The notes beneath the pieces were generated by a model. It had not been told where the DNA came from. It saw nothing but the letters and a program-made list of their open reading frames with translations, and did not search any database. Below, in pieces: positions 307 through 10,917 of a stretch of 64,000 bases of DNA. The DNA lies in assembly GCA_029953675.1 (NCBI GenBank), contig JAMWBK010000004.1:2170001-2234000 (forward strand), written 5' to 3'. This stretch comes from Rhodosorus marinus CCMP1338 (taxonomy: Eukaryota; Plantae; Rhodophyta). Position numbers and translations under genes: made by a program. Within the stretch, counting starts at the first letter, position 1. Every line of letters begins with the position of its first letter.

Positions 307-3300
307 TCATATAAAATCGTCGTCAAGTTTCGTATCAACCTTTTTGGGCTTCGTCTTCACTGCCTCCTCATCTTCGGCGGCCATAGAGAAAAGCCAATCA
401 AGTGATACCTCCTCCTTCGATTCTTCCTCGTCCTTAGCGGCCGTGTTCTCGATTGGCACTTTCGTGTCCTTCGCATGCCCTGAACCGGTCCCCTTCGCTG
501 GAGGACGAGTACGATCGTCTTCGGATACCATGGAGAACAGCAAATCGAGTGGCACATCTTCATCTTCTAATGCTGCTTTAGCATCTGCTTCATCTATATC
601 GTCTTCCAAATCGAGGTCGTCCAGGCCTTCGAGCTCACTAAGCTCATCGCCGTCGTCATCTACCTCGAATTCCTCGGCCAGCGTCCCGTCCTCGTTGAAC
701 AAGTCTGCGATCTCTGTGTCGAGACGAAGATTCAAATCGTCCTCTTCGTCCTCTAACTCAGACTCATTATCCACCTCATCCTCATCCTCTAAGACGTCTT
801 CAAGGTCCAAGAACCCATCCTCGCCTTCATCGTCAAAGCCCAGCAACTCTGTTCGGGAATCACCCTCCTCCGCCAAGCCGGCTTTGAGGAAGTTGATGTC
901 GTCATCCTCTTCCTCGTTTTCGTCTGCTGCTGCTTGAGGTGCGAGCGGATCATCGAGCTCGTCCTCATCCTCATCTTCGATGATCAAGTCTTCTTCAAAG
1001 CCCTGATGGTCGGACGGAAGATCTTCAAGTTCGTCACTGTCCATTAAGGGTGCAAGACCCAATGAGTCAAGATCATTGGCCGGGACTGGAGCCTTCTTGA
1101 ACCAGGTTTTCGAATCCGTCACCTTTGTCCTCGAACGCCGATCCTGGAAGTCCGACTCGCCAGGATCTTCGTCCGGAATAGACTGGTCGATTCTCTGCAA
1201 AAATTCCTCATCACTGACATCATCATCCTCTTCTGTACTCGGGTGTTCGGTGAAGTCCTTCAGAACTGACAGCAACTGCTTGTCTTCACTTCCCTCGAGT
1301 TTGGCTGAAGCTGCATCAACGCGGGATACGTCTTCCCCTTCTTCAAAACCATCATCATCCGTTTCTGATCCAACGAAGTCTTCCGACTTGTCTTCTGTGA
1401 GCAGATTGCCCTCGTCATCTTCGTTCTCAAGCCGGACAACATCATAGGGCAAGTTCTGCTTCAAAGTTCTGTTGAACATCTTCAAAGCCACAGTCACCTG
1501 GCGACCAGAGAACGTATCAGCCAAATTGGAAAAGGAAAAAACCAATTGTAGCCACTCGGAACATTCTTACCTTGCCTTGACGGGGAAGAGTCTGCTTCAC
1601 CACTCCAGTGCACCCGCCATACGGCCCAGACTTCACAACTATAACATCACCCTTCTTGAAGTCTCTATTACGACGACGCAGTTTCTTCATGTTTACGTTG
1701 GACAAACCTTCCACTTGGCCCAGAATCTCATCCAACTGAGAGAAAGCAGGTTGGAAGAAAAAGAACGCAGTTGCTATCAGCACAGGAAGCTCGAGCAGGC
1801 AGATCTCCCCTTCCCCCCCCCCCCACCCCCCACCAAAGGTCAAGTCCATCTTTTTCATCCCTACCTCATCCGTTCCATCCTCGGGACTCCGCTCCTTGAC
1901 TTCCATTTGATCAAAACTGACCTCCTCTTCTGTTATTCGATTTAGCACAAAGACTTTCACAGTAGCCTAGATCATGAGGGCAACTCGCTTAGCCACGGTG
2001 GGGGAACACAACAAAAGCTTAAACAAATGACATTTCGAAAACGATAGACTACTAAACTCTTGAATGCACAAAGTCATGTAACCGGAACGTAAGCCGAATG
2101 CAAACTTGATAAACAAATTGCAGGTTCAGCAGGTTGTGCAACATAGTCGAACAATGCACCCTGGGACATGCTCAAACAAAGACTCTCTTCGGCGAAAATA
2201 CGACCTCGTCACAACGGACACTAAAAGCGATTTTTTCGCATCCTGAGATCCACGAACGCGCTAAACTTACCACTGACTGTTCAGGAATAACCTTGACAAC
2301 GCTTCCTTCATAATTAGAGAAGGGTCCGGCAGTGATTTTAATTCTCTGACCGGGCAGAAACTTGGCGTCAGGCTCATTTGTGCCATCCTCAGCTCCTTCA
2401 CTGGCGAGTCTCTGGAAAATTTGTTGTATCTGCGCAAGAGCATGTGCAATCAGTTCCTTGCCTCCACTTGATCCTCCGAATACAAGCCTTGGCAATCGTA
2501 TCAGTTGAAATACTTACAACTTGAGGGGGAACCGCAGGGGGCTTCTGAAATGTCCCCTTGAAGTCCTTTTGATTCGTATCCCCGACAAAACCTTGCACAT
2601 ACGGAACGTTGTTAATCTCACGCCAAGTTGGGAAGTCCATAACCATATATATGAGCAGATAACCGGGAAACATCCTGGTTTGTCGGAAGTGGAAACAGGG
2701 CCATGTCTCAATATTTTCAATTCCAAGCTTTCTGAAGTGTTCTAGAAGTCCCTGCAGCGTTCTCACCTATCGTCCTTCTTCACAGTTTTGCCGGCTTTCG
2801 TCAGCTGCATGACACCGATTTTAGGGACTATGACGTCCGCAACCTTCCTGGCAATATTTGGTAGCGAATTGACCATGCCATCAACAGAAGCTCGCACGCG
2901 GTCCTCCATTCCTGCACGTGCTTGTAAAAAGAACCATTCTGGAGCTCTGTTTTGATCGAAATGAAGCCCGCTCTATGATCCAAGCACACACCAGCAAACA
3001 TGTCAGGAAGAGCCTTTCCACACCTGTCCAACAGCTGATAGCAAGACTTTTCTCACCTCTGCTACCAACTCCGCTCCACTCGCTACTTCTTGTACACCGT
3101 CGTTCTCAGAGTCCTCTTCAGGATCTCCTAAAGAAGTCTCTTGGGGCTGATCTGGCAAATCCTCATCATCCTCCTCTTCATCCAGACTACCGAATTTGTC
3201 CCAATTCCGATCTAAGCACGCCTTGAAATCGTCCCCAAATTGGGACGAACCATGGCCACCAACACTCATTCCAACAATACATCTTCTTCTGCATCCAGAA

Positions 3301-4281: not shown

Positions 4282-5514
4282 TTAGCAGAACTTGCTAGGT
4301 AGTCTCGGAGTTTGGGATAGAATAACACTGAGTTCTTCGTAGGTGGGTACAGAGCGTGCTGCGTCAATATGAAGGCACGCGGAGATCAGCGCATAATCTA
4401 GGAGCAGATTTGGATCAAGAGCGGTGTTTCTTTGTAAGCAGGAGACTGTATAGGCCAAAGCTCCAGCTACGAATGCATCGCCAGCGCCCGTAGAGTTGAT
4501 AGTTCCCTCTGGCATGTACGGGCCTCGAAAAACGCGCAGACCAGCGGACGTTCCTTTCAAATTTCCCTCGCTCAGCTTTCCAACGGTGTCGGGATCAGCG
4601 TTCGTGGCCAAGTATGCGCCGTGCGCTCCTATTGAGATGGACACAACGCCAGCCCCACGACTGAGAAAGAAGTCACCCAAAGAAATCACATCCTCCATAG
4701 TAGCAGTTTCCTCATCGATGGAAGCCCTGAGAGTGTGAACGAGTAGCGGCCGATCAGAATTCAATGCGGGGTCAAGGTTTGCGTGGACTGGGTCATGGGG
4801 CTTACCCCGAAACAAACGCAGCTTCTTCGAGGTTTGCATGGACGAAAAAGCAGTGTCGCAGAGCTTCTGTGATCACGCTGGGCTCAGGCTTATCCGCACC
4901 GTTGATGTCGAGGCTGACCAACAGAGAGGCGCGCTTTGCAGCGGAAAACATTTTGTCAAGATTTTCACCCTGTAGATTTCGCATCAAATGGGGATAACCG
5001 AAGTGGAAAACTTTACAGAAAGGTACTCGCTCGAAGAGATCTAGCTTATCTCCGAGAAGAATCTCTGGTGTTGCGACAGAGTTTGCACCCAGGTCCACGT
5101 AACAACCTCGGCCACCGCCTTTAAAAACCGGTAACACTGCTAGCGAGGTGTTGACCTGAACGGTTTACAGAAGTAGTTAGTTAGGTCCGGCACAGAATAA
5201 GGAAACGCTTGCAGGTGAGTACCAACCTCCGGATCAATGACTACGTGGTCTGTATTAACCCCGTTCTCATTGAGCTGTCTGAGGAGCTCTTTTCCGTGAG
5301 GATCATCACCGAGTAGAGTTGAGGCTAGAACTCGTATCTGCAGAGATCCAAGCACACGCGAAGTATTGCTGCATGAACCACCAGCTTCCTGTTTCGTGCC
5401 ATCGAAACTAGTAATAGCCTCTAGAGTTTTCGGACGCTCAGCAGCCATCAGCATCATGTCTACGCAGCTCAGGCCGCAGCACAGGACTCCATACCGATCG
5501 ACCCCTGCCATCAT
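4282..5514 (-). CDS. PfkB/ribokinase-family carbohydrate kinase, 3 exons
   Basis: VLCCGLSCVDM, GGSCSNTSRVLGSL, LGDDPHG, HANLEEA and the PfkB anion-hole signature NSTGAGDAFVAG across ORFs 5140-5655, 4802-5137 and 4282-4839. Confidence 0.85.
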
Positions 5515-6720
5515 CTCCAGCACAAAAAGAAGGACGACAACACCCCCTGTAGATTTTAGGGTCAGGCGAATTCTTCCCAGTCCAAAACAGATCCACCTCC
5601 CATTCAGCGACATCCCTCCCCACCAAATCGATCCGATCAGCAAAACATCCTCCATCCTACTCCGTGAAACGATTCAACCACAAACTACCCATAATGCTTG
5701 ATATTTATTTGTTTCGTGTTTATTCCTGGAGATCACTTGAAAATTAGAAGCTTTCTTCTTCAATCGATAATTCTCAACCACTCTACCCAGGCCCTCCCCC
5801 CCCGTTTAAAGAGGAGCGACAATACTTCTCTGAGTTTGTTTTCAAAAACAAAAACAAGCTTGTGACGAATCGAGGACCTATTTCAATAGTTGATTAACCC
5901 CGTGGATCGTTCGATGGTCGTGCGCGGGATATTATTAAATATAAAAACTATTTTGAGGTTTTATGGCATTTAGATATTTGCTGTACCCCTCATGAAAAAA
6001 AGGGATGTATGCGTTTGTACTATTGTACTACTTTTTTGCGTTCGACATTAGTACAACCAGCGATTCAGACGAATACGATCCATTTGGGTTGGATAGTACG
6101 CTGTCAGTACCTTTAGTGAATTCTGGTAGGAGTTTATTTGTTTTTATTTCTTTTTGTACGGACGCCGTTGGTGGGGACATTTTTTTGTGCAAGACTGGGA
6201 AAAGCAATCGAAGGCGGTGCGGTGGAGCTTGGTAGGGGGTTTTGACTTTTGATCGATCCTTTTCGGGGTTTTGCAGAACTGCGCGGAAGGAAGGGAGGAG
6301 GGTGTATTTGCGTTAGGAGGAAGGAGTGGTCTGGATCTGTTGGAGGCTATCGTGATTGAGGAAGAGAACGATCTTATTGAACTGACCATCGGAACCGATG
6401 CTGTGAAGTGGTTGGATATTTTTCTTCGTTCTGTTTTGGATTGCTGAGTGGGATTTTGGGGAATCCGTGAAGATCCATCAGCGATCTTGGAGCGGTGATA
6501 ACTTTTTGAGACGAGCTTGGAGGAAGAGGATCGCTGGTTCCCATTGGTATGGGAGGCAGACGATAGGGAAAGAGGGTGATGGACGGGATGTTTAGATTGA
6601 TAGGAATTCCCGTCCATGCTATCACCTCCTGTCGCTCTTTTTTAGAGCTAACTGCGTGAGGTTTTTGAATACGATCTGACGTTGAACGTGTGGAGAGTGT
6701 GAACACAGAGGAATTCAATC

Positions 6721-8554
6721 ATGGGAAAGCTCCAGTCGGTGAAGAGGGTGCTGCCGATGCGCCCCCCTCCCCCAAACTGGCAGCTTTTCGAGTTGAAAAG
6801 ATTTTGCTTCGAGGGCTTGGACATTCCCATGTTCAGAAATCCAGCTGTTCTGAGGAGAGCGCTGACTCACCCCACGGAGAGAGACCTTTCTAGAAGATAC
6901 GGCCACAACGCAGCCTTCCAGTTCCTCGGGTTGAGGCTCATCTCTGCAGTCATGGGCAACCTTGCTCTAAAATCCAAGCCCCTACGACTGCAAAACATGG
7001 TTGAGTATGTTACAAGTATGAGCGAGCTCGCGAAATGTGGAAACAAGATTGGACTAAAGCACGTAGTCCACTTCCAGAGAAACAAGATGGGCAGCCCTAC
7101 AGACGTGAATCTGCTTGGCTCCACATATCAGGTATGTCTGTTTCGCAGATATCCCCAAAGCCGTCATAGATCCACTACTTAAAAGAATTCCCTTCGTTTT
7201 CTCGCCGTGTCTCAAGGCGGTAGCGGCAGCAATACTGGTAGACTTTGGTTATGCTGAAGCACAGAAGTTTGTGGAGAGAGGCTTTGCGGAGTTGCTCAAG
7301 GAAAAGCTGGCAGAGGAAGAGGACAGATTCCCCCGCCAACCACACCAAGCCATCTCGGCGGAGATTAATTTCTGGAGGAATCAATCAAAGAAACTGCACA
7401 AGAACAAGAGACCCGAACCACGAGGAGAAATCATCGCGGAAGAAGTGAGAGGACGAATTTACTGTAGAGTACGACTGGAAGTCCTGGGGATCGTTTTGGG
7501 GGTAGGTTCTTACTGTCCGAGCTTCATTTTCAGCAATCCTTGCCAAAGTGTCGTTTAGGCTGTCTAGCTCTGCCTACATTTCTCCGTGACTAAACCGCTT
7601 CTTTCGCCCCCTGTCGTAGAGAGGTGATGGACGTGGGAAGACGCAAGCTGTTAAGAACGCTATTCGTGGAGCTCTGGCTACTCTTCAGAGTCCATACGAG
7701 ACCTTTGAGAGACAGGAGTGGATCCACGGAGACGTTTTCAAACAACCTGCCCACAATGGGCTTTTGTTCTTGCAGGCCCTAGGATGTGTGAAAGATGTCC
7801 GGTATGTTTCAGGTGCTTGCTGAATCATGTGTCTTCTCGATTGGCTGACTCTCTTCTTAAATCTGCCAATGTACACCATAAATAGAAAGACGAAGGATGA
7901 TTGTATATTAGTAGACAGAAAAAAGAAGTACACCACGGGTGAAGAAGCGATCGCGGAACTCCGCCAGCGGACTAGCCACGATTTACAGGATACTGAACAC
8001 ATGCGTTTTGGGTTGGATCTCGACACGAAGAGATTAAGCAAGTACCTCGAAGAAGCCGACATGAAGCAAGTGGCAGAGTTAATCATGGTACGTAGGATTC
8101 GACCGAACCATCTCTATCCCGCCCTGCATGCCGAGGTTCTCATGCAGCAGTGTCACTCGTTGTGACTGGCTCGTTTCCCCTCCAGGTGGCGAACGATAGG
8201 AGCCAAAAACGGCAAGTTTCAAATCGTCTGGTTGTTGGACACATGTTGGTCGATCTGTTCGCATCCGAGGAGGCTTTCTGGGCACTTGCCGTGAACAACG
8301 AACGAGCTGAGGCCGATGGAATGGATCGTTTGATGAGAGCACAGTCGCAGATATGGCTCCAAGCACAGAGAGCGGAGCTGTTGGGTTTCCTCGCAACTGA
8401 TAAGACGGTGGTTGAAGATGCGAAGAATCCAGTCAAAAGAATTTTGGAATCTCAAATGGCAGGGGCCCTGCGGCTGACCCTTTCCGTCGTCTTTGAAAAT
8501 CACGGTTTCAGTGCTGTAAGAGACTTGATGCATGCTATTACATACTATGAGTAG
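6721..8554 (+). CDS. RNase III-like (degenerate) - dsRBD - second RNase III-like (degenerate) protein, 5 exons
   Basis: Domain 1: LRRALTHPT, HNAAFQFLGL, KIGL, GSTYQAVAAAILVDFG. dsRBD: CRVRLEVLGIVLGRGDGRGKTQAVKNAIRGAL. Domain 2: SNRLVVGHMLVDLFASE, AELLGF, GALRLTLSVVFENHGFSAVRDL. Phase-compatible introns at about 7132-7216, 7502-7619, 7802-7882 and 8088-8185 join the ORFs; an upstream exon cannot be excluded. Confidence 0.7.
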
Positions 8555-8695: not shown

Positions 8696-10917
8696 TCAGA
8701 GCTTCATCTCTTGAATCGCCATGAAGCTATGTCTCATCCGGCTCAAAGTTTCCAGCTTCGTCTTAGGTGTGATTAGGTACAGTCTAAGAGTTTCCAAATC
8801 CTCCAACAGCAGAGATCTGCTCTCGCCGGTCTTCCCATGTCTGTTCATGTAGTTCAAAAGCGCTTGCTCTAATATTGCGACTTGAACGAGAATTCTGGTA
8901 TTGCACATGAGCCTAGCACGGAACGGAAAGAGGTATCTTCTCAGGTCTAACTGCCAAGCCGAAAGCGGTGGGCATGAAAAGACGGCCTTACCAATTCTCG
9001 TCGTTGAGCTTTTCGGGATCTGCGCAAGACGAGTAAAGCTGTAGGCTCCTGTCGATGTCGTGCAAGGCGACAGCCCCCCTGATCGTGGATGACATTTTGT
9101 CTATCGTGCGCTCTCTCATCAGCCTCCTGTTACTTAAAGTCATCACCCATCCCAAGAGAACCATTATTATGCCAGCTGGTGCCAAACTGCGTCATGGCAA
9201 GAGGAAGGAGCCTGCAATGAGCCTATATCACCTTCATCGGAAGTTTCTTGCAAGTCAGCTGGTCGCTTACGAAGAAATCCACAGATTGATCTCATTCGCC
9301 CTCATCAGCTGCTTTACCGAGGTCATGTCCTCCTCGAGTTGAACCATAATGCGTTGGACTTGGATTAGCATCGCCTGTGTGAGGTACCCGGCTACCATAT
9401 TTCTGAATGGGTGAGCCATTTGCTCTTCTATCGTCTTCATTACTAGCGTCATGTCTCCCTGGAGCGACGCAGCAGTTAAGGTCAATTATAAGGTTCGCAT
9501 CTGTCGATTCTTGGAAGCTTGCTCACCAGCTTCGCGCTCTCCAGATGGCTTGGATCGGTGGACTTGGTTTTAACAAAGTCCAGAATCATCGTGTGCAAGC
9601 TTTCTCTTGCCTGTTTAGTGAAGGAAGAACCCATATCTTAGAAGAACTCCCCCACATATTATTCACTTGAAAACAGCGTGGCCTGTCTGTTGAGGGGAGA
9701 CCCGTACATCTGCAGCGGACTTCACCTGCTTTTCGGTATCATCGGATTCGCTGACAAGGTCCAAATAAATATGCAGGAGTGGGTCCACCATCCGGTCCTA
9801 TTGGAAAAGGGAATACGGCGAGTAAGTAGTGGGTGGGCGGAAAAATAAGCATCTACTAAGTGCAGTTCCCGTAGGGTGACGGGACAGTTTGAGCCCCTAT
9901 AGCGGTAACTTACGTTTATGAAGTCCTTAGCAAATTCACCGCGAGAGAGTACCCATCTTGAAAAACCATCAGAATCGCCCTTGGTAAGTTTGTAGTAAGC
10001 TACGGTTACCCCGACTCCTGCCATCACCGCCGTGGTCACTGGAAGCCTGTTTTAGTATCCGAAGCAAGTGGGGTTGCTTTAGTCTTGAGTGCACTACATC
10101 AGCACGTTGAAGCTACGCTTAAGATCGGGAAGTCCAACGTACCAGTTTCTTCTCCACCATCTAGGGATGGATGAGATCTGAACCACACAGTTCCTAATTG
10201 CATGCGTGTTCGACTGTATGGTTTCCTCAAAATCTGCCATCGCCACGTCACTTCCGGGTGAAACTTTATCAACCGACATGAACTGCAGTCTCTCTAGGTC
10301 CGCGTCGGATACGGCATCAATCATTGCAAGAATATGTGCCCTGATCTGCTTCGTCTTGGTCTCAACGTCCGTCCAAACCTCAGAGCCCAACTTTAAAACT
10401 GAAACCGCTCGATGGATTTCGCCTACTAGTCTACAAAGAACCGCGTCCAGCGCTTCCAGGGATTGCAACCTCTGCGATATAGTTCTTTCCGAAAACTTTC
10501 TCCATCCTGATATGGGGACCTGATATAACTTCTCGGTATGGGCTTGGACTAGATACCAAATAGGTCTATCACACCACGGCGCCAAAGCATACAACGCATG
10601 CCCAAGAGAAGGCAGATCAGACTCACTCCTTTTTCGTGCTGGGCGAGCGCATAAGAACCCACAGCTCACCTCCTGAGGCAATACTGCCAGTATCTTCTCT
10701 CGGCGGAGAGCGTTGCCAGTCCATCCACGCAAGAATCGATAAATACCCCAACGCATCTCAAAAAATGATCAATCTGCTCCAGGGCGCGCTCGGCACTCTC
10801 GGACATTCCATCTTCACCGGGCTCAAACGGAGTGGACTCCAAGGGTATTAATAGCGGAAGATCTGATTCTCTCAGCGCGCGAAAAAACTTCCGACTCTGC
10901 CTCAACTTCAGATCCAT
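8696..10917 (-). CDS. NCA2/DGS1-family mitochondrial outer-membrane protein, multi-exon
   Basis: LTQAMLIQVQRIMVQLEEDMTSVKQLMRANEINLWIS matches the NCA2/DGS1 C-terminal LLIQ..K.D...AM..LDQIL.ANEIN pattern; hydrophobic segments at 9722-10039 and 8988-9185. Confidence 0.7.

Follow-up and report, generated by a model that had tools for sequence, protein, structure and literature searches.

A Rhodosorus marinus gene encoding a probably non-catalytic RNase III superfamily protein with a putative role in holding RNA

Within the stretch of Rhodosorus marinus CCMP1338 DNA that was analysed (64,000 nucleotides of contig JAMWBK010000004.1, positions 2,170,001 to 2,234,000; hereafter the window), a set of separate open reading frames between positions 6721 and 8554 had been joined in an initial annotation into one protein with the order RNase III domain, dsRBD, RNase III domain (RIII-dsRBD-RIII). 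The question raised by this locus is whether these pieces really form one gene and, if so, what function can be expected of an RNase III-like protein in which the cutting residues are missing. We find that this nuclear gene encodes a 482-aa protein of the RNase III superfamily, which is probably, although by no means certainly, non-catalytic and would serve as an RNA-holding or scaffolding subunit.

The two halves belong to a single spliced gene

The coding region comprises five exons and four introns (Table 1). Its spliced CDS (1449 nt) yields a translation that matches KAJ8905935.1 (NDN08_002436, a "hypothetical protein" of Rhodosorus marinus) with 100% identity over 100% of its length. All four junctions named in the initial annotation (about 7132, 7502, 7802 and 8088) are present as GT donors, with the acceptor AGs ending at 7216, 7619, 7885 and 8185, and the motifs quoted there (AAFQFLGL, STYQ, NRLVVGH and GALR) were all found as given in the spliced translation; the C-terminal part, which had been placed from 7883, begins instead with exon 4 at 7886. 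An in-frame stop lies seven codons 5' of the ATG. Because the length of intron 3 is divisible by 3 and this intron contains an in-frame TGA at 7821-7823, the ORF track shows the gene as two pieces.

Table 1 Features of the locus at positions 6721-8554 of the window
Feature	Position	Strand	Description
Coding region	6721..8554	+	5 exons, 4 introns; 482 aa
Exon 1	6721..7131	+	aa 1-137; short basic N-terminus MGKLQSVKRVLPMRPPPPNW, then bulk of RNase III domain 1
Motif AAFQFLGL	6910..6933	+	aa 64-71, exon 1
Motif STYQ	7120..7131	+	aa 134-137, exon 1
Intron 1	7132..7216	+	85 nt, GT..AG, phase 0
Exon 2	7217..7501	+	aa 138-232; end of RNase III domain 1, linker, dsRBD helix 1 and strands
Intron 2	7502..7619	+	118 nt, GT..AG, phase 0
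Exon 3	7620..7801	+	aa 233-293, final codon split; dsRBD helix 2 (GRGDGRGKTQAVKNAIRGALATL), conserved post-dsRBD segment
Intron 3	7802..7885	+	84 nt, GT..AG, phase 2
Exon 4	7886..8087	+	aa 293-360; low-confidence beta-beta-alpha segment, first helices of the C-terminal RNase III-like domain
Intron 4	8088..8185	+	98 nt, GT..AG, phase 0
Exon 5	8186..8554	+	aa 361-482 and stop; core of the C-terminal RNase III-like domain, including invariant LFAxEEAFW and WL(R/Q)xQRAxxLG
Motif NRLVVGH	8222..8242	+	aa 373-379, exon 5
Motif GALR	8462..8473	+	aa 453-456, exon 5
RNase III domain 1 (Pfam extent)	6841..7282	+	aa 41-159, across intron 1
dsRBD	7331..7688	+	aa ~176-255, across intron 2
C-terminal RNase III-like domain	8013..8551	+	aa ~336-482, across intron 4

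The two halves are connected by transcripts. A fully spliced 481-aa transcript peptide from a second strain (P0114) spans both of them and contains the junctions STYQ/AVAAA (intron 1) and KDVR/KTKDD (intron 3), and another transcript peptide of that strain (P0112) also spans both, with 15 extra codons at intron 2 (+VGPYCPRFILSDPCQ). Further isoforms retain intron 2 (P0115, from the same strain) or intron 4 (P0110, P0113 and P0111). The genomic relatives agree with this structure: contig L003 carries an uninterrupted, intron-free ORF of 1449 nt encoding a 482-aa orthologue (P0003) and has a downstream NCA2-family neighbour in common with R. marinus, which indicates microsynteny, while contig L002 has introns 3 and 4 at identical positions and phases. 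The orthologue from a Purpureofilum transcriptome (P0004) is likewise 482 aa long. The N-terminus is identical in P0114 and P0112 and conserved in P0003 and P0004.

We considered whether gene prediction might have merged two adjacent genes, one encoding the first RNase III domain and the dsRBD and a separate one starting from about 7827 or 7886. Such an arrangement would fit the multiple-of-three intron with its stop, the ATG at 7827 that opens an ORF in the same frame, and a transcript-derived 87-aa peptide (P0111) that begins within intron 3. However, P0111 keeps intron 4 too and is therefore derived from unspliced RNA; together with the two transcript peptides crossing both halves, the unbroken ORF of P0003, the equal length of P0004 and the canonical intron that L002 has at this codon in the same phase, this makes two genes extremely improbable. 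The halves belong to a single fused gene, as the initial annotation had proposed, and positions 7883-8554 do not form a gene of their own.

RNase III domain 1, the dsRBD and a diverged C-terminal domain

The first domain was readily assigned. Residues 41-159 match Pfam PF14622 (E 4.8e-12; 46.6 bits against a cut-off of 35), and a profile search retrieved bacterial RNase III from the PDB at E 4.4e-9. A search with the profile of the N-terminal half gave 104 matches, namely four red-algal orthologues followed by 100 bacterial proteins consisting of RNase III and dsRBD (167-419 aa, mostly about 220-270 aa), so that the nearest relatives of this half outside the red-algal clade are, as judged from sequence, the bacterial RNase III enzymes. 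An alphaproteobacterial origin of the N-terminal half was considered and rejected, since proteins of delta-proteobacteria, acidobacteria and cyanobacteria score similarly among the named matches.

A residue-by-residue reading of the alignment to Aquifex RNase III showed that all six acidic active-site residues are substituted (Aquifex numbering first): E37 by A64, E40 by Q67, D44 by L71, E64 by Q91, D107 by S134 and E110 by Q137. Accordingly, the signature (N)ERLEFLGD and the metal ligands corresponding to Aquifex E40, D44, D107 and E110 are absent from the R. marinus domain, which has NAAFQFLGL and GSTYQ at these sites. The six substitutions hold in two Rhodosorus strains, whose proteins are 92% identical. 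Sequence comparison thus identifies domain 1 as an RNase III family member with lost active-site residues.

For the dsRBD, an hhalign comparison of residues 173-295 with 97 bacterial dsRBDs gave P 7.3e-5 over all 77 template columns, a score that was matched by one of 100 block shuffles. A phmmer alignment to the RNase III of T. maritima (1o0w), covering query residues 38-250, also extends through the dsRBD of that enzyme, and the Pfam dsrm model was detected in the P0003 orthologue only, at an E-value of 0.0025 that is below the cut-off. The net charge of the domain is +10. The N-terminal half therefore has the class 1 layout, a single RNase III domain and then a single dsRBD, and the additional C-terminal domain exceeds this architecture. 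The bacterial class 1 enzymes (Aquifex aeolicus, Thermotoga maritima and E. coli) share the order RNase III domain, linker and dsRBD with the N-terminal half at about 19-27% identity, whereas the Rhodosorus chain continues with a post-dsRBD segment of ~75 aa and then a further RNase III-like domain.

The C-terminal part proved far more diverged. Its sequence had no match in Pfam, either as single sequences or with all alignment members, and its profile retrieved only chance matches from the PDB sequences, such as fumarylacetoacetase and TAF14. By hhalign, domain 2 aligned to 97 bacterial RNase III domains at P 0.047, which was equalled by 11 of 150 column shuffles and 32 of 150 block shuffles, and to the protein's own N-terminal domain at P 0.12; because shuffled profiles attain the same score, this likeness was rejected as evidence. 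The resemblance to RNase III motifs that the initial annotation had seen in NRLVVGH and GALR is thus within chance at the sequence level.

The fold was therefore judged from predicted structure. RNase III sequences were kept out of the alignment for residues 297-482, as they would bias the fold test; it comprised seven sequences, none of them an RNase III, with P0006 included instead of the spliced L002 product. A combined alignment of the full-length proteins with bacterial RNase III was set aside for structure prediction, because MAFFT misplaced the fragments P0005 and P0006 onto domain 1. The resulting AlphaFold2 model (pLDDT 80.1, pTM 0.75) was compared with the PDB by Foldseek, and the matches ranked 1-27 were all RNase III domains (probability 0.77-1.00), from bacteria, Drosha, Dicer and plant RTL4, while the first unrelated match had a probability of 0.08. 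The best match reached E 5.9e-3, probability 1.00 and a target-normalised TM of 0.57, with an rmsd of 3.9 A over 115 columns; the top matches had TM values of 0.52-0.57 normalised to the target and 0.45 normalised to the query, and E-values ranged from 6e-3 to 1, with none at or below 1e-3. The modelled structure thus supports an RNase III-like fold for the second domain, and with it the RIII-dsRBD-RIII architecture, in which the second RNase III domain is placed by structure prediction and not by sequence.

The C-terminal part might instead be a helical domain with no relation to RNase III, such as a module for protein interaction, in which case the protein would amount to an inactive class 1 RNase III extended by a tail particular to its lineage. 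The silence of the Pfam, PDB profile, HMMER and word-indexed searches, the hhalign score lying inside the shuffle distribution, and Foldseek E-values in a range where all-helical folds are prone to spurious similarity would all be expected in that case. On the other hand, each of the 27 best structural matches is an RNase III and the next, unrelated one falls to a probability of 0.08, in a model made without RNase III sequences. Moreover, the non-significant hhalign alignment is collinear over 140 columns (template 4-147 of 155) and places G378 on the signature glycine, and the misplacement by MAFFT, which was unprompted, put P0005 and P0006 on the signature region of domain 1. We consequently consider an unrelated domain unlikely and retain the assignment to an RNase III-like fold.

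Relatives of the C-terminal part were sought in sequence databases and metagenomes. Outside six close relatives, no sequence similarity was found: a HMMER search of 1.84 billion representatives with the C-terminal domain gave four matches, all of them clade members or fragments, a word-indexed search also gave four, and two scans of metagenome contigs revealed no additional relatives. Judging from these searches, the protein is so far restricted to a small group of red algae. P0003 is 44-45% identical to the Rhodosorus protein, and the two halves differ little in conservation when Rhodosorus is compared with the Purpureofilum-type orthologues (45-47% and 39-43% identity). The LFAxEEAFW segment, which forms the predicted interface helix of domain 2, is invariant in five to seven aligned relatives. 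The Rhodosorus and Purpureofilum members both belong to the Stylonematophyceae, the clade in which minicircular mitogenomes have been described (PMC10250338).

RNA holding, domain pairing and residual catalysis

Since the cutting residues are absent, the most likely role of the protein is to hold structured RNA, not to cut it. Mutational work on E. coli RNase III is a precedent, as substitution of E117 by K, A or Q abolishes cleavage while dsRNA binding is kept, and the D45A enzyme is inactive in vivo (PMC8708148). The N-terminal half is a bacterial-type (class 1) RNase III with the catalytic-domain fold and dsRBD but with the six acidic residues substituted, and the C-terminal third is predicted to supply another helical domain of RNase III-like fold that has diverged to an extreme degree and in which acidic residues are also absent at the aligned positions. 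These two domains may pair via their signature helices, as do the subunits of bacterial RNase III or the RIIIa and RIIIb domains of Dicer and Drosha, and, together with the strongly basic dsRBD, would line a valley in which double-stranded or highly structured RNA is gripped but left uncut. Such a protein could serve as an RNA-holding or scaffolding subunit. In bacterial RNase III, such a valley is formed by homodimerisation; for the Rhodosorus protein we infer an intramolecular pseudo-dimer, with intermolecular N-N and C-C dimers equally possible. A full-length AlphaFold2 model from a four-sequence alignment had a pLDDT of 35 and was of unusable quality.

The loss of acidic metal ligands claimed in the initial annotation thus stands for domain 1, where all are lost, and for domain 2, where none is present at the aligned positions, but "dead" describes the Rhodosorus protein only. 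In domain 1, the equivalents of E40, D44 and E110 (ALESLGD, STYE) are still present in P0004 from Purpureofilum and in the closely related P0003, so the family as a whole may not be catalytically dead; both proteins also have a D at the D44-equivalent position of domain 2, and both are without the E37, E64 and D107 equivalents.

These residues bear on whether the protein is, or recently was, a single-site nuclease, in which domain 1 carries the active site and the degenerate domain 2 acts as a partner only, as in the heterodimers of the trypanosome editosome, whose endonucleases pair with degenerate RNase III partners. The corollary would be that Rhodosorus has undergone a recent loss of function or uses other residues. 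The three acidic residues retained by P0003 and P0004 fit such an enzyme, and the E. coli D114A mutant is weakly active in excess Mg2+ (PMC8708148). Nevertheless, all six positions are replaced in both Rhodosorus strains, and even P0003 and P0004 are incomplete; besides, overall conservation persists despite the loss of these residues, which argues that the function is independent of catalysis. Both the nuclease and its corollary therefore appear quite unlikely to us, and RNA binding without cleavage remains the function that we infer. The retention of three of four core acidic residues in P0003 and P0004, together with the diverged domain 2, provides a small natural series suited to studying how an RNase III dimer loses catalysis yet keeps RNA binding.

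Relation to known systems and possible location

Dead RNase III domains have repeatedly been recruited as RNA-holding modules, as in RNC1, mL44/mL57 and the editosome partners, and the Rhodosorus protein, which is uncharacterised and clade-restricted and whose function is a proposal, would be a further and apparently independent case. An organellar location is weakly preferred, mitochondrial more than plastid. The N-terminal extension is only about 20 residues long and conserved, unlike a typical cleavable targeting peptide.

RNC1 of land plants resembles the Rhodosorus protein in being one polypeptide with two RNase III domains from which residues essential for catalysis have been lost; it is a high-affinity RNA binder that does not cut and functions in group II intron splicing (PMC9275481, PMC8708148). 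It differs in being plastid-targeted and in working with WTF1. A plastid RNA splicing or maturation factor operating like RNC1 would accord with this demonstration that intron RNA can be bound by a protein whose two RNase III domains are both dead, and with the group II introns carried by Proteorhodophytina plastid genomes (PMC8995046). However, intron proliferation in these plastids is concentrated in the Rhodellophyceae and Porphyridiophyceae rather than in the Stylonematophyceae (PMC8995046). RNC1 had been cited as two RNase III domains plus a dsRBD, but these accounts describe it as RIII-RIII and mention no dsRBD, so that the domain order differs and the parallel is looser than proposed (PMC9275481, PMC8708148). 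Nor did a specific relationship emerge, as none of the 104 matches of the N-half profile has a plant or RNC1 name. Furthermore, three independent models agree in placing no more than about 20 residues ahead of the RNase III fold. Typical red-algal plastid transit peptides are longer than this and have an N-proximal Phe, which the Rhodosorus N-terminus lacks. A plastid factor of the RNC1 kind is thus very unlikely, and an RNA-holding role that is, if organellar, mitochondrial is preferred to it.

The mitochondrial counterparts are mL44 and mL57, vestigial RNase III-family members that are closely associated with each other and with helix H0-ES of the 21S rRNA (PMC11345376, PMC7947838). In fungi, mL44 (MrpL3), with a dead RNase III domain and a dsRBD, is paired with the second dead RNase III-like protein mL57 (MrpL15), and the pair holds an rRNA expansion helix (PMC11345376, PMC7947838); these are two polypeptides, whereas the Rhodosorus protein is one. 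It might accordingly be a mitoribosomal protein, a fused equivalent of this pair that binds an expansion segment in the mitochondrial LSU rRNA, which is very diverged in Stylonematophyceae, as its parts match those of mL44 and mL57. Its N-terminus is short and basic, with the first acidic residue at position 24, and many nuclear-encoded mitoribosomal proteins of R. marinus are without recognisable presequences (PMC10250338). Human mL44 aligns with the N-half profile at P 3e-4 (hhalign), but this alignment is limited to 70 columns of the RNase III core, with a probability of 39.6%. The motif (K/R)RVLPxxPPPPNW also bears a weak likeness to QRLLRCPPPPVRRSEKPNW of human mL44; with a shuffle p of about 0.03-0.05, it was set aside as evidence and kept as a lead only, and no mL44 was among the PDB matches of the N-terminal 63 aa.

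Against a specific relationship to mL44/mL57, which the initial annotation had also suggested, the PDB profile search finds bacterial RNase III, RTL4/NFD2 and Drosha and no mL44 or mL57 chain at E<=10. In the Foldseek comparison of the C-terminal domain, a mammalian mL44 chain appears at rank 30 with a probability of 0.25, and no yeast or Neurospora mitoribosome chain is among the top 50. In the published accounts consulted, experimentally confirmed mL44 comes from animals and fungi only, a jakobid homologue being unconfirmed (PMC7947838, PMC11345376). A fused mL44/mL57 equivalent is hence unlikely, although it deserves more weight than a plastid factor.

Compared with Dicer and Drosha, the Rhodosorus protein likewise has two RNase III domains and a dsRBD in a single chain, and its C-terminal model matches their RNase III domains. 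Nevertheless, their order is RIIIa-RIIIb-dsRBD rather than RIII-dsRBD-RIII, and those enzymes are active; the Rhodosorus protein is also without helicase, PAZ or other accessory domains. Plant RTL4/NFD2 (PDB 9h4a) is matched by both the N-half profile (E 1.4e-4) and the C-terminal model (ranks 14-15), yet the deposited chain is short (143-163 aa) and the similarity is no closer than that to the bacterial enzymes. The RIII-dsRBD-RIII order was not found described in the literature on RNC1, mL44/mL57 and RNase III and is apparently new.

The mitogenomes of Stylonematophyceae are minicircular and hyper-diverged, and their rRNAs escape standard rRNA finders (PMC10250338). A more specific form of the RNA-holding function, to which we give a rather low likelihood, is a single-chain pseudo-RNase III dimer peculiar to this clade, which would have arisen in the Stylonematophyceae independently of Dicer and Drosha and would serve the expression of the minicircular mitogenome, either as a structural component of the mitoribosome or by holding the transcripts of the minicircles. 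If mitochondrial, the protein would open a first way into the RNA biology of the minicircular mitochondria of these red algae.

One five-exon gene across both halves

In a eukaryotic stretch of ~48% G+C around 6721-8554 (+), five ORF pieces are joined at canonical GT..AG sites into a CDS of 1449 nt, which encodes a 482-aa protein, and the four donors lie exactly where the initial annotation had placed its junctions (see table). Along its entire length the spliced product shows 100% identity to the Rhodosorus marinus "hypothetical protein" KAJ8905935.1 (NDN08_002436) at NCBI, named "RNase III domain-containing protein" in UniRef; the nuclear assembly of strain CCMP1338 has been described (PMC10250338). 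The five-exon gene model is correct.

The ORF track displays two pieces because intron 3 (7802-7885), 84 nt long and thus a multiple of three, contains an in-frame TGA (7821-7823) followed by an ATG (7827). Two adjacent genes, the second occupying 7883-8554, are ruled out independently by spliced transcripts, by two orthologues and by intron positions. P0114, a "complete" 481-aa transcript-derived peptide from a second strain of R. marinus (92% identical), contains each of the four junctions, begins with the same N-terminus and joins both halves, while the shorter isoforms of that strain match the expectation for retained introns. P0003, a Purpureofilum-type orthologue (44-45% identical), is encoded on contig L003 by an uninterrupted 1449-nt ORF, and the Purpureofilum apyrenoidigerum transcriptome contains an orthologue, P0004, of 482 aa. 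Moreover, L002, a 1.8-kb contig from another organism, carries, on one strand and in matching order, the dsRBD end, a piece resembling exon 4 and the last exon, and its introns agree in codon position and phase with intron 3 (phase 2, following V-K/R) and intron 4 (phase 0) of the window gene. The proposal that introns join the ORF pieces into one gene is thereby confirmed.

Two peptides of the second strain (P0112 and P0110) are lengthened in frame by 15 residues (VGPYCPRFILSDPCQ) at the donor of intron 2; the insertion separates strand 3 from helix 2 of the dsRBD. Isoforms retaining introns 2, 3 or 4 would yield truncated proteins lacking domain 2.

Features of the gene, its transcript isoforms and its NCA2-family neighbour
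Feature	Position	Strand	Basis or remark
Exons	6721-7131, 7217-7501, 7620-7801, 7886-8087, 8186-8554	+	GT..AG joins
Introns	lengths 85, 118, 84, 98 nt	+	GT..AG
Intron donors	7132, 7502, 7802, 8088	+	GT
Post-dsRBD segment	7689-8012 (aa 256-335, ~80 residues)	+	conserved; between dsRBD and domain 2
NCA2-family gene (ATP synthase regulation protein)	window ~8699-10752; L003 1749-3341	minus, both	Pfam PF08637 (L003 copy), tblastn
NCA2-family gene pieces in window	8699-8914, 8991-9458, 9875-10567, 10684-10752	minus	tblastn; multi-exon
P0115	intron 2 retained		transcript-derived peptide, second R. marinus strain
P0110, P0113	intron 4 retained		transcript-derived peptides, second R. marinus strain
P0111	introns 3 and 4 retained		transcript-derived peptide, second R. 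marinus strain

Domain 1, its active site and the dsRBD

The N-terminal RNase III domain (domain 1; aa 41-159) matches Pfam PF14622 (RNase III-like) with 46.6 bits (cut-off 35), and a four-orthologue profile retrieved bacterial RNase III structures from the PDB (E 4e-9). The N-half profile ranked the four red-algal orthologues first and then 100 bacterial RNase III+dsRBD proteins, 167-419 aa in length (mostly ~220-270 aa); none of these matches belonged to mL44, RNC1 or other eukaryotic families.

In the alignment to Aquifex RNase III, the active-site residues E37, E40, D44, E64, D107 and E110 correspond to A64, Q67, L71, Q91, S134 and Q137, leaving no acidic residue at either metal site of domain 1 in both Rhodosorus strains. 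In the E. coli enzyme, substituting K, A or Q for E117 (the E110 equivalent) abolishes cleavage but not dsRNA binding, and D45A is inactive in vivo (PMC8708148). Since all the acidic residues are replaced and such mutants are inactive, we can safely infer that catalysis is lost in the Rhodosorus protein. Judging from the aligned residues, however, this loss is not shared by the entire family: the corresponding stretches of P0003 and P0004 are ALESLGD and STYE (aligned to window aa 64-71 and 134-137), which keep the E40, D44 and E110 equivalents (three of the four acidic core positions), those of E37, E64 and D107 being missing. This suggests that the active-site loss is incomplete or recent within the clade. 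The initial claim that all acidic ligands are gone thus holds at the aligned positions of both domains in Rhodosorus, but not for domain 1 of these orthologues.

Residues ~176-255 are assigned as a dsRBD by sequence comparison. The phmmer alignment to Thermotoga maritima RNase III continues through its dsRBD (query 38-250), and hhalign against 97 bacterial dsRBDs gave P 7.3e-5 over the whole template, equalled by one of 100 block shuffles; the Pfam dsrm model matched P0003 only, under the cut-off (E 0.0025). The segment has a net charge of +10. The following residues (aa 256-335) show the pattern SPYETFE..W..GDV....N.L.FL..LG and then a predicted beta-beta-alpha unit, without any family match.

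Predicted fold of domain 2

Judged by sequence, the 190 residues at the C-terminus form an orphan region. This part had no match in Pfam and only chance matches in a PDB profile search; HMMER against 1.84 billion representatives retrieved four proteins, each either a clade member or a fragment of the last exon, a word-indexed search added just two further Rhodosorus fragments, and two metagenome scans found no relatives. With bacterial RNase III domains, hhalign produced a colinear alignment over 140 columns that pairs NRLVVGH with ERLEFLGD and GALR with D..E, the same motif equivalences as proposed in the initial annotation, but its score (17.65, P 0.047) was equalled by 11 of 150 column and 32 of 150 block shuffles and was rejected as evidence.

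The fold itself was addressed with AlphaFold2, using aa 297-482 and an alignment of seven sequences containing no RNase III sequence. The model had a mean pLDDT of 80.1 and a pTM of 0.75, with low confidence confined to the first ~40 residues (aa 297-335 being mostly low, higher nearer domain 2). In a Foldseek search of the PDB, ranks 1-27 were all RNase III domains (Campylobacter jejuni, Mycobacterium tuberculosis, T. maritima, E. coli and Aquifex RNase III; Drosha; Dicer RIIIb; plant RTL4). The best match had E 5.9e-3, probability 1.00, TM 0.57 (target-normalised) or 0.45 (query-normalised) and an rmsd of 3.9 A over 115 columns, and the first unrelated match had a probability of 0.08. These predictions give moderately good support to an RNase III-like fold of domain 2, which we regard as highly probable. 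The single RIII-dsRBD-RIII gene first noticed is real, with gene model, domain 1 and dsRBD recognised by sequence and domain 2 by predicted structure.

The hhalign-aligned acidic positions of Rhodosorus domain 2 are S, L, H, G and R. At the D44 equivalent (window aa 379), P0003 and P0004 have D (LIVGD), L002 has N and L001, another contig with a relative, has E. LFAxEEAFW, the predicted signature helix, followed by WL(R/Q)xQRAxxLG, is invariant across five to seven aligned relatives. Rhodosorus and Purpureofilum-type proteins are 45-47% and 39-43% identical in the two halves, indicating similar rates.

Possible mode of action, analogies and distribution

To function, RNase III domains dimerise through the signature helix, with one active site per domain and a shared dsRNA-binding valley, as in Aquifex structures, Dicer and Drosha. 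By analogy, a chain that has two RNase III-like domains, which may pair with each other, and a basic dsRBD but no metal ligands would most simply act as an RNA clamp that binds without cutting, and the invariant signature helix of domain 2 and the similar rates of both halves fit this reading. The interpretation as a single-chain non-catalytic RNase III-family RNA binder is partly supported. Non-catalytic RNA binders of this family are already known, and RIII-dsRBD-RIII is a variant of them; neither the protein nor this architecture was described in the limited collection of literature searched.

The fungal mL44/mL57 pair, which holds an rRNA expansion helix (PMC11345376, PMC7947838), is the closest functional analogy, having the same parts but in two chains instead of one. 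Profile, hhalign and fold searches found no specific affinity to it: no mL44 chain was among PDB profile matches at E<=10, hhalign to human mL44 reached a probability of 39.6%, confined to the RNase III core, and a mammalian mL44 chain ranked 30 (probability 0.25) in the Foldseek search with the domain 2 model. A conserved (K/R)RVLPxxPPPPNW (window 6742-6780, aa 8-20) directly precedes the RNase III fold and resembles human mL44 LLRCPPPPVRRSEKPNW / QRLLRCPPPPVRRSEKPNW (residues 47-65, PDB 3j7y_c) at the equivalent place; its Smith-Waterman score was equalled by 3-5% of shuffles (p 0.03-0.05), so that this resemblance may serve as a lead only. Among single-chain proteins, the closest analogy is RNC1, which binds RNA with high affinity, whose two RNase III domains are both dead, and which is described without mention of a dsRBD (PMC8708148, PMC9275481). 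By these descriptions, the RNC1 parallel drawn initially is less close than proposed; RNC1 is plastid-localised, and a relationship is not detectable at the sequence level.

In three independent gene models the start precedes the RNase III fold by ~20 residues and lies downstream of in-frame stops. The resulting extension (MGKLQSVKRVLPMRPPPPNW), conserved across genera, is basic and has its first acidic residue not before position 24; its length falls short of a usual plastid transit peptide, and as a mitochondrial presequence it would be atypical though not impossible. Many nuclear-encoded mitoribosomal proteins of R. marinus have no recognisable presequence (PMC10250338). All named family members are from Stylonematophyceae (Rhodosorus and Purpureofilum), the other sources being L001, L002 and L003. 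Mitogenomes of this class are minicircular, GC-rich and highly diverged, and standard tools failed to detect their mitochondrial rRNAs (PMC10250338, PMC8995046). This coincidence motivates, but is no evidence for, the idea, which we consider unlikely, that the protein is specific to this clade as a factor serving mitochondrial RNA or the mitoribosome.

L003 also carries an NCA2-family gene (Pfam PF08637, 3e-34) convergent with the P0003 gene and homologous to the downstream gene of the window (tblastn 2.9e-38). The adjacency is conserved in Rhodosorus and the L003 organism, and this shared convergent neighbour indicates that the two loci are syntenic orthologues. Elsewhere in the window, ORFs 4282-4839 and 5140-5655 (minus; span 4282-5655) resemble exons of a carbohydrate kinase of the pfkB family, the first having a GAGDAF motif and a Pfam PF00294 match under the cut-off (E 1.5e-4). 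A 412-aa ORF at 307-1545 (minus) has an extremely high Asp and Glu content and overlaps a plus-strand ORF (200-937) that is serine-rich, as complementary codons predict.
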